From the NCBI GenBank assembly GCA_025558095.1, contig JAIVFI010000031.1, positions 310,001-374,000 of the forward strand: a stretch of 64,000 nt of DNA, read 5' to 3'. The notes beneath the pieces are model-generated. The model ran no database searches. It was not told where the DNA came from and saw only the letters and a list, made by a program, of their open reading frames with translations. How positions within the stretch are numbered: the stretch's first letter is position 1; each line of letters opens with the position of its first letter. The position numbers and the translations under genes are program-made. This document shows, in pieces, positions 21,652-25,759 of this stretch. The DNA comes from Hyaloraphidium curvatum SAG 235-1. Lineage: Eukaryota > Fungi > Monoblepharomycota.

Positions 21652-23891
21652 TCAGTCGTCGTCATCATCGTCCGTGCCGGAGTCGTCGCTGTGCTCCTGC
21701 TCGTACCGCTGCTGATCACGAGCATCCGGGGGTGCCGCCGCCCCTTCCGTGCCGTCCTCATCCGCGTCGGGAGCCCGCATCGACCTCGCAGGGTACTCGT
21801 CCTTATGGTAGGTCTCCCACACCTCCAGGGTCTCTTGAAACCTGACCCTCTTCTTCAACGCATCCAGCACCGCTTCAGCGAGGCCAGCGAGCGGATCTCC
21901 CCCGGCCAGGGTCTCCGCATCCGCCGCCAAGTCCGAGCTCGCTTCCTCCGAGGCGACAAACGATCCGCTGCGCTGTGCCGCGCACTCGAAGCACCATCCA
22001 TCCCAGGCACGGAACGACGAGCGGTGTTCGCACACCGATGCCACCTGCTGCGCCTGCTTCAGGATCTGGACCTCGGTCCGGGACAGCCGCGCATCCTCCG
22101 CATCGAGCAGGTCCGCGAGGAGCTGCCGCACCGCCTCGGCCTGGCCGCCGCCCGAGAGCGACATGATCTCCATGCACGCTCGGACATCGGCGCGGAGGTC
22201 GCGGTGCAGACCCAGCGCCGAGGCTTGTACACCAGCCGGCTCGGTCGCGAGGAGCGATCGGAACCGGCGGAGCACGAGGAGGTGCAGCCAGGCCGCGTGT
22301 GTGGCGGCGCTGACGGCCATTTGGGCAAAGACCACGTCACGGGCGACGGCGTCCTGTCCCTCGCGTGCGGCGCACATGCGCATGTTGGCGGATATTTGTC
22401 CGGCGCATCGAGAGGCCTCGCGGAAGGACGGGGAGGAGAACCAGAACAGGAGGAGTTCGGCCTCGGCTTCCTCGTTGCGCACGCCGTCGCTGTCCTGGCT
22501 TACGTCTGCGAACGGTTCGGGGCACATGAGGAGCATTTGGATAAGGCGCAGTGTTGCGAGGATCGCCATCACGTGCGGCCGCAGTGGCGGAGCGAGATCC
22601 GTCAGCGCCGCGGCGAGGGCGCCGTGATCGCTGTCTCGGGCAGCGGAGACCAGATCGTGCGGCAGATGGCGCTCGACGTCTCTCATGGCATGGAGCAAGA
22701 ATGACCGCCGGCGAATCGCTTCCGACAGCAGCGGCTTCCCGAGCACCGCTTGGACGTAGGATGCCGGAAGCTGCGCCGGCAAGGAGCTCGTTCGAAGGAC
22801 TTCCTCCGCGACCAACAGATCCAGCATCGAGAGTCCGGCTTCGTCACTGAGCCACGAGCCAAACTCGGCCACTTTCTCACGAATAAACATGACGAGGAAG
22901 TCGACGAGCGAAAAGCCGTGCGCAATGAAGTTGGGAAACACCCAGGCGAGAACTTCTGCGCGTCCTAGTGCACCGACAGGGCCGGGATTTGAGTGATCCA
23001 GCCACCCGAGGAACTCGCGGCATCGAAAAGCGGGTTCGGACCGAAGCAGATAGTCCGGCACGGGAACGTTCGGGGCGCGCTCCGTCGGGCCGGGAACGTC
23101 GCGAACCATGAGCACCGGGCGCAACAGCGGCGCCGTGGGAAACTCTTTCGCCAGATCGTACTCGAGTTTGCGACCGGTGTTGGCGGCGATTGCCGAACCG
23201 CTGCGTAACCGACCATGGGGTAAGCAGTCCATCAAAATCTCACCACAATGCAGCGAAGGACCCACATTAGTACCAATGGCGTCCAAAAAGCGATCTTCCA
23301 GTGCTCAAGAAGCAGCAGGTCGTCCATGTCCTGCGGTTCATACTCGTAGCCCGTCTCGCCCGGCAAGCGGATCCGCCTGAAGATGGCCAGGGACAGCTTG
23401 ACGAATGCCGGAGCGCCTTCGATGCGCGATACAGCAAAGTGGCAGAAACTGCCGGCCAGCTGCACAGCGAAAGCGAGAGCCAGGTTCTCAATCGAGTGAA
23501 GAGATCCCCCGGTGACAGGTGTAGAATCGGCTTCGCGCCAGAACCGCGCAAGGTCCGCCTTCAAGGTTCTTTCGACGAAATTCCGCTCCAGCAGGACGCC
23601 GAGATCGCCCAGAGAATGTGTCGTCGAGAAGCTGCGGTCGTCTGCAGACGCCGTGCGGCGTGCGAGGGCCGTCATTGCGGCCATCCAGTTCACGACAGAG
23701 ACCACCACAGGGTGGCCGTAAAGGCGAACCCATCGTTCATCGCCGGTCCACTGCTCGCCCGATTGGACGGCTAGGAACATCTCGTGCTGGAAGGGGTGAT
23801 GCCGCGAGGGACTAAAGAGACCCAGGCCTCGACAAGGGACCGAAATCGAGGGGTCAGCCGCGGCCCATCGTCCGTCGCGGAAGGCGGCCAT
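21652..23891 (-). CDS. Protein with fungal transcription-factor middle-homology-like region and C-terminal PP1-docking RVxF motif
   Basis: Two ORFs joined by a probable intron near 23272-23200. EHWKIAFW...NTGR resembles the Fungal_trans region. C-terminal KKRVRFQETLEVWETYHKDEYPARSM. Confidence 0.55.
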
Positions 23892-24056
23892 GGCACGCCA
23901 CTCGTCTGTGTGCGCGGGATCACCATCGGCGAAGGGCGGGGATGGGGGATTGAGGGGATTGAGCGTGCCTTCGCCACAACGGCAGTGTCGTCATTGCGCA
24001 CCGAGGGACGCGAGGGATTGGGATTCTCTCCGTCTTTCATAAAGCCGACCGTTCCA

Positions 24057-25507
24057 TCATGCCTCTTTGGCCTCCTCTCTCGCCTTCCGCTTCTTCCGGT
24101 TCAAAGCAGCCGTATTGTCACAGAATTCGCAGCAGGTCGCGACGGAGAAGCCCAGCAAACCGGCCAGCAGACCAAGGATCCCGCTCAAGAATGCCCAGCC
24201 TGCGATCAGAGAGGCGGTTAACGGCGACGCTCAACCGGCCCCGCTTGCAACAGCCACCACGTCAAGGAGAACCCACCATTGTAGATCGACGTCTCCACAA
24301 AGGTCTCAACATCGAGCGAGCCGAGGGTGAACGACAAAATGAAGGTTTCGCGGGCCCCAACAAGAGCTTGCACGGGGCGGAGCGAGGATACAACGGGCCA
24401 TCTCTGCTGCACGCAAGACGGCAGCGGGCAAGCCTGTTCGGGATCGCAGGCCTCAAATAGGGTGCACCTGCCCGATCCCGACTGACACGGGTAGATCGGC
24501 TGCTTGGTCGGGCAGCGGCCTTCGAGGAAAGCGCGCTCGCACGAGCCGGGTACTGCGTCTGGATCGAATCCGCCGTTCTCGGCCGTCGGGTAGCGGCAAT
24601 TGCAGTTTTTCTCCACGCACTGCTGTTGGAAGTTGATGCGACAGGCCGACTGCCCGCCCGGCGCGTCCGTGCAGTCCTTGATGAGGGTGGTCTCCTCCAG
24701 CGAAAGGAGAATCCGGTAAAGGACGCCCCGCGACACGACATTGTTCAGCAGCGGTTCGGTCGCCGGATATTCCGCGTTGACGATGCCGTACGAGATCAAG
24801 TCGAACTCCCCATACGAAGGGAACCTGCCCGCGATCGAGAGGCTTGCACCGGGCGTGATCGGGGCGAATCCGCTATCGCCGGTGTTGAAGATGCGGCAAA
24901 CCGTGGGCAGGATCGTGAAGGGAAAGTCGACCCATTGAGTAACGACCGGGCCGCACGTGCCCTCGGCAGGGATGTCCTCCCCGAGAGAGCCCAGGCCAGC
25001 GACGCAGGCCATGCCGCTAGAAGTTCCGTTGACGAGCCCTTGGATTCCTCCGGTAGGAACTGCGACGAATTCCTTTGCTTTGGTCGCGTTCAAGGTACTC
25101 AGGCAGACTGCAAATCCCGGGAACGGGAACGGCGACCTGCGCTCCTTGCCGACCGAAGTACTGGTCGGCCGGCTAGCAAGGTACATGGCCTGGATCACAA
25201 CGTAGGCGATGAACAAGCCCCAAAGCACGAGCCCGAAGAGCAACCAAAGCCGACGGGACCACAGCGAGCGGGATTTGTCGACCGGCTTGACCATGTACGG
25301 CGGGGCCCCGGAATCGCTCGTGATGTAGAAGAGCGAGTCGCGGAAGTTCTTGGGGAGCTCATCCCCGTCCGCTTCGTCGGCAGCCACGATCTCCTCTTCG
25401 TCGGGTGCTTCCACGACGGGGATCTCGAGAACCTTGGCATCGCCGTTCTCGGGCAGGGTGCCGGCCGGCACCGCGGCGTCCGGTTTCTCCACCGGGTTCG
25501 CGTCCAT
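24057..25507 (-). CDS. DEG/ENaC/ASIC superfamily ion channel subunit (2 exons, intron 24276-24200, 457 aa)
   Basis: TM1 RRLWLLFGLVLWGLFIAYVVIQAMYL, post-TM1 PTSTSV...FPGFAVC, thumb ACRINFQQQCVEKNCNCR and CPLPSC, SLDVETFVETSIYN. Spliced TM2 is GWAFLSGILGLLAGLLGFSVATCCEF. Confidence 0.85.
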
Positions 25508-25759
25508 GTTTTCTGCTATCGTGCAGATTGCCCTCTACGGCTGCTGACCGCTCTCGTTGCGCGGAACGCAGGCAGCGGGTTTTTTGATCAAGGGTTCAAG
25601 CGGGTCGGCCTCGGGGTCCATGCGCTCTGCGTTTCCTCGCTGACCTAATCCTGAGGTCAAGCAGCTCCCACCGGAAGCCGGAAGGCGCGAAGGATCAAGT
25701 GCTAAGTACGTTAGCCCTCATGGAAATTCCTTCATTAGAAGAATTGAATTGGAGCTACA

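Follow-up and report, generated by a model that had tools for sequence, protein, structure and literature searches.

Hyaloraphidium curvatum, an early-branching freshwater fungus, carries a small family of DEG/ENaC ion channel genes, one of which, lying within the 64,000-nucleotide stretch of genomic DNA analyzed here (hereafter the window), is expressed. Animals use DEG/ENaC channels for sensing acid, touch and salt. The original prediction, which recognized the gene from its sequence, described the channels as generally considered absent from fungi, and our survey agrees with this: no report of a fungal DEG/ENaC channel was found in the open-access literature. In a BLAST survey that included Fungi (Elkhatib et al. 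2023; PMC10507113), the candidates came from holozoans and, beyond these, from a single alveolate and a single stramenopile; it used animal queries and missed the fungal family. The database entry of the protein described here (P0001) does already bear a precomputed, automatic PF00858 tag.

Gene structure and transcription

The gene occupies positions 25507-24057 of the window (minus strand) and encodes 457 amino acids (aa). Exon 1 (24277..25507) specifies residues 1-410 plus one base, i.e. an acidic N-terminal tail, the pre-TM1 segment, the first membrane helix (TM1) and the complete ectodomain. Exon 2 (24057..24199) contributes the second membrane helix (TM2), a short basic C-terminal tail and the stop codon. 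Between them lies a phase 1 GT-AG intron of 77 nt (24200..24276, minus strand; GTGGGT...CGCAG) with an in-frame stop codon at 24220-24218. Read without splicing, the open reading frame (25507-24218; 429 aa) terminates within the intron, and its product has no second hydrophobic helix (the best 19-residue hydropathy value after residue 380 is 1.06, vs 2.07 for the spliced form).

That this intron conceals TM2 had been proposed from the DNA alone, together with the suggestion that RNA be consulted, and a public spliced-RNA assembly bears the proposal out. Contigs of run X1, which cover both exons, omit exactly the 77 nt, which on the minus strand are bounded by GT..AG. They also omit seven introns in two flanking genes, which indicates that run X1 represents spliced RNA and that the channel gene is transcribed. 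An NCBI protein of H. curvatum (P0001; “hypothetical protein” DFJ74DRAFT_354864) is 457 aa long, 100% identical and has the same junction, but this record may itself derive from run X1 RNA and so does not provide independent support for the splice. Such support comes from homologues without an intron at this place, which continue directly into the exon 2 sequence and TM2. A transcribed 5′ leader extends over 25508..25593 (minus strand); at 25593 the RNA contig runs into adapter sequence and stops, which does not fix the true start. The two-exon gene is thus confirmed as a genuine, transcribed gene of H. curvatum.

A single 4.3-kb RNA contig (window positions 22900-25593) spans the channel gene together with its same-strand neighbour. 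The two genes are separated by 166 nt, the intron at 23200-23266 is spliced, and both overlapping UTRs and read-through fit this arrangement. The downstream gene (window positions 21652-23891) is expressed and spliced, and has no Pfam match.

Assignment to the DEG/ENaC family

Three lines of evidence support the assignment of the gene product as a predicted DEG/ENaC-family subunit, as originally proposed. The search that had been recommended, with the Pfam ASC model (PF00858) against the 457-aa product (record P0001), gave 36.7 bits (cut-off 23.6) with the match at residues 286-437, while exon 1 alone scored 20.8 bits. Six fungal-side homologues or paralogues also exceed the cut-off (24-99 bits). 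Among control genomes, a PF00858 match above the cut-off was seen in Thermotoga maritima, which may be spurious.

The second line is a fungal-only profile, built from 18 sequences of H. curvatum and its metagenome relatives. All 24 of its matches in the PDB are DEG/ENaC proteins, ASIC1 being the best (E 2e-16; 63 bits) and ENaC alpha scoring much more weakly (33 bits). The channel protein is about 15% identical to ASIC1, and PDB searches with the single sequence found no DEG/ENaC protein; the weak EphA2 matches that they returned (E about 0.07) were dismissed as chance.

The third line is the predicted fold. An AlphaFold model of residues 52-445 (monomer; 18-sequence alignment; pLDDT 71), which replaced a first model with pLDDT 55, shows the palm, beta-ball and thumb, and matches ASIC1 by Foldseek (E 5e-15; TM about 0.5-0.57) and by VIA-align (Z 17.5; 311 residues aligned at 5.3 Å). 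Its nearest neighbours in the Atlas are ASC clusters. Two hydropathy peaks (residues 86-112 and 411-437), with which the model helices agree, place two membrane helices around the large ectodomain. The structural comparison proposed earlier, made here with a monomer, gave the expected likeness to ASIC1 and ENaC (Z 14.6-14.9 for the alpha, beta, gamma and delta subunits).

It is very improbable that the product is instead a chloride channel of the PAC/TMEM206 type, or some other trimeric two-helix protein with a mere resemblance to DEG/ENaC. PAC shares two helices and a beta-rich ectodomain with the model and aligns with it at Z 12.5, and the lack of a His-Gly (HG) motif in the query might be read in the same direction; however, DEG/ENaC chains hold all of ranks 1-8 in VIA-align, above PAC, with unrelated chains at Z 7.3 or below, and no Pfam TMEM206 match was obtained at E values up to 10. 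The Cys-rich thumb, the G-x-S belt and the HG motif of the paralogues are DEG/ENaC features, and PAC/TMEM206 is not known to have such a thumb or such a belt.

Conserved and altered residues

The sequence landmarks listed in the original prediction were all found. TM1 (about residues 83-112; 25172..25261, minus strand), delimited by hydropathy, the model helix and Pfam, begins at RRLW. The FPxxxxC motif after TM1 (residues 129-135; 25103..25123, minus strand) reads FPGFAVC, with the Thr of FPxxTxC replaced. The Cys-rich thumb (Cys289-Cys365; 24413..24643, minus strand), located by alignment and within the Pfam match, starts with the spacing C-x7-C-x4-C-x-C; ten Cys lie within residues 279-365, one of them, corresponding to the second thumb Cys of ASIC1, displaced by four residues. 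ASIC1 (chicken and human; PDB 6ave, 2qts and 9e4a) thus resembles the fungal protein in fold, pre-TM1 position, FPxxxxC motif and thumb cysteines, while its finger has no sequence match there.

The predicted gapless match of TM2 to ASIC1 was upheld by the profile alignment (chicken ASIC1 numbering = query + 16). The G-F-S belt (residues 427-429; 24144..24152, minus strand) corresponds to G443-A444-S445 of chicken ASIC1, and Glu435 and Asp438 (24117..24128, minus strand) to the lower-pore residues E18′ and D21′ of ASICs. In chicken numbers, G436 (G3′), G443 (G10′), S445 (S12′), E451 and D454 are retained, whereas five positions differ: S432 replaces the Gly of the degenerin site, G433 the Asp at 0′, L435 the Gly at 2′, A439 the Gly at 6′ and G440 the Leu at 7′. 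The replacement of the TM2 Asp by Gly had been read correctly, but it is not peculiar to this gene: the 0′ Asp is missing from both fungal subfamilies described below, whose members have Gly, Ser or Ala. The column of the post-TM1 ASIC His (H73/H74), a residue that proton gating requires, contains Thr in all fungal members. With both of these residues replaced, the sequence would not place the product within the proton-gated ASIC subfamily.

The pre-TM1 His-Gly pair serves gating and is highly conserved; DEG/ENaC channels are described as having it almost without exception, although it does not define the family. It is absent from the query, where Pro69-Pro70 (25298..25303, minus strand) occupies the position of the family's re-entrant loop motif in the alignments. 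The earlier reading of this motif as Ser-Gly has to be corrected, as Ser66-Gly67 aligns with a Ser-Thr of subfamily B, three residues earlier. In known channels the His-Gly belongs to a re-entrant loop beneath the belt, and ENaC opens less when the motif is mutated (PMC7308080). All ENaC subunits keep the motif, and the fungal ectodomain is shorter than theirs.

Genomic loci and subfamilies

Five DEG/ENaC loci were identified in the H. curvatum genome, on two contigs: the present gene, three intact paralogues (C12:266 kb, C12:721 kb and C31:93 kb), all of which carry HG, and a truncated duplicate (C31:81 kb). The duplicate (C31:80924-81769) is a copy of the 5′ two-thirds of the C31:93 kb paralogue with 91% nucleotide identity; it stops before the lower thumb and TM2, and is annotated at NCBI as a 609-aa hypothetical protein. 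Further relatives were seen on metagenome contigs from Lake Mendota and other assemblies.

A tree of the H. curvatum loci, the metagenome relatives and a Chromosphaera protein separated two subfamilies, A, which includes the present gene (support 100/100), and B (97/97), and left one Mendota protein unplaced. A and B are about 35% identical to each other, and the members of A share 47-55% identity. In B proteins S-T-A-H-G precedes TM1, and TM2 contains G-G-M-M-G-L-L-L-G-F-S, much as in ASIC. In A the former columns read S-x-A-P-P/T, so that Pro-Pro or Pro-Thr replaces His-Gly, and two TM2 glycines are shifted in every member. Tree and alignment together show an old duplication that gave rise to HG-bearing B and HG-less A. 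Two Lake Mendota proteins, P0004 and P0014, have His-Asp where His-Gly is expected, and possibly represent a third subfamily.

The genes beside two metagenome B copies map adjacent to the C12:266 kb copy of H. curvatum, and those beside two A copies encode proteins 63-77% identical to H. curvatum proteins. With homologues in related freshwater genomes, one of them in a syntenic position, the family has been passed down within the lineage as its copies diverged to about 50% identity; it is an old family there and not a contaminant. Within the limits of the search, a related genome (SRR26194948) yielded two copies of A and none of B. Word-index homologue searches are insensitive. Scanning metagenome and viral contigs by pattern brought up no relatives, a weak negative in each case.

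One lake A copy (L021:475-1597; JGI 3300042870) breaks off right after TM1 and enters an unrelated ORF of 358+ aa. The same protein was found on a Lake Mendota contig too. Motifs in the ORF recall a family-A-type polymerase of mobile elements, without a Pfam match, and an insertion may have interrupted the channel gene here.

Origin of the family

Two histories of the DEG/ENaC channels are under discussion: an animal origin with later leakage to some protists, or a greater age followed by widespread loss (PMC10507113). Among 1.84 billion representative sequences, a search with exon 1 gave 12 matches and no other fungus, although 50% clusters can hide members. The sole named non-fungal match is an uncharacterized protein of Chromosphaera perkinsii (EukProt EP01135_P003703; P0012; E 9e-4). 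The fungal-only profile aligns with it along the whole protein, including TM1, the palm, the start of the thumb and TM2, and scores it by a modest margin above ASIC1 (77 vs 63 bits). It has the same C-x7-C-x4-C-x-C spacing and, like the query, no recognizable HG, but differs in its low identity (20-24%), a thumb insertion of about 100 residues, Glu at 0′, a GAS belt and a branch of 3.3 changes per site. In Tunicaraptor and Cafeteria (PMC10507113 supplement), as in ASIC and ENaC, the thumb spacing is instead C-x3-C-x8-C-x-C; these two are non-animal members too, yet keep HG and an acidic 0′ residue (PMC10507113). The profile score and the shared spacing point to one divergent lineage common to these fungi and an ichthyosporean. 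Ichthyosporeans are not listed as having DEG/ENaC genes in PMC10507113.

The original prediction offered ancestral retention or horizontal acquisition as explanations. Its second option has to be narrowed, in that a recent acquisition is unlikely; retention and ancient transfer both stand. Under vertical descent, to which we give an even chance, a divergent DEG/ENaC lineage already existed when animals and fungi last shared an ancestor; this fungal lineage and Chromosphaera retained it, and most other fungi lost it. The nearest outside relative is indeed a unicellular holozoan, however distant in sequence, which has the unusual thumb spacing in common with the fungi, the third-position GC content of the channel gene (GC3 0.79) lies within the range of its neighbours (0.77-0.92), and the old duplication and the synteny speak for descent as well, but many losses are demanded, and no other fungus appeared among the 12 matches. 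A single ancient transfer from an ichthyosporean-like unicellular holozoan, or from another protist, into the ancestor of the lineage before the A/B duplication is a serious candidate, if short of an even chance: it accords with the very narrow fungal range and the specific likeness to Chromosphaera, and transfer among osmotrophic eukaryotes is documented, although fungus-ichthyosporean pairs lay outside that screen (PMC13345962). Against it, the very long branch of Chromosphaera indicates that this organism is not a close donor, and the pattern scan of viral contigs, a weak negative, found no viral carrier. The supposed absence of the channels from fungi would itself invite suspicion that animal or protist DNA had contaminated the assembly or formed a chimera in it, but the probability of this is negligible. 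The contig, 573 kb long, has ordinary eukaryotic, fungal-type genes around the channel gene; the introns are short and of GT-AG type, and the channel gene is found in spliced RNA together with its neighbours. With five loci on two contigs and synteny in independent samples, the contig is fungal, as the prediction had assumed.

A bolder scheme, which we regard as doubtful, would make the fungal family and the Chromosphaera protein a deep third DEG/ENaC branch predating the animal-fungal split, with heteromers evolved independently in fungi and the HG-less subunit gating by a different lower-pore mechanism. An old, duplicated and expressed fungal family with a sister-like ichthyosporean sequence adds a kingdom to the distribution of DEG/ENaC channels and provides deep outgroups for rooting them.

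Proposed function

The account that we consider likely as a whole is that of a genuine, expressed DEG/ENaC subunit from a small inherited family, with A acting as a modulatory partner. By analogy with known channels, the product is most likely a trimeric, non-voltage-gated cation-channel subunit. Three subunits would quite probably assemble in the plasma membrane around a cation pore that is independent of voltage and that the acidic ring of its lower part makes Na+-preferring, and the ectodomain would open or modulate it on an outside signal; in ASICs, E18′ of the lower pore governs Na+ preference (PMC7062507). Proton gating of the ASIC type is probably not to be expected, because the post-TM1 His is Thr.

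Because every A member has Pro-Pro or Pro-Thr instead of His-Gly and two displaced glycines in TM2, A may work poorly alone and serve as a modulatory partner in A/B heterotrimers, perhaps needing B; this proposal is about evenly balanced. In such a heterotrimer A would widen the upper pore and lower block by Ca2+ and by amiloride, to which DEG/ENaC channels are usually sensitive, positions 439 and 433 presumably being those tied to such block. ENaC offers a precedent for unequal subunits within one trimer. The main alternative is that three A subunits can function without B and gate in their own way, through a pore that the Pro-Pro loop and shifted glycines render wider, less selective or permanently leaky. 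The changes are conserved in all A members in spite of their divergence, the belt, E18′ and D21′ are intact, and the genome with two A copies, if its lack of B holds, is a poor fit to obligate A/B pairing. This alternative nevertheless seems unlikely to us, since HG substitution cripples ENaC (PMC7308080) and H. curvatum retains three intact HG-bearing paralogues.

Whether in A/B heterotrimers, as we favor, or otherwise, the channel's likely task, judged by analogy, would be chemical or osmotic sensing in fresh water. The family also hints at sensory channels of the animal type in early fungi. Since a single genome here holds natural paralogues with and without HG, the role of the re-entrant His-Gly loop could be tested directly.
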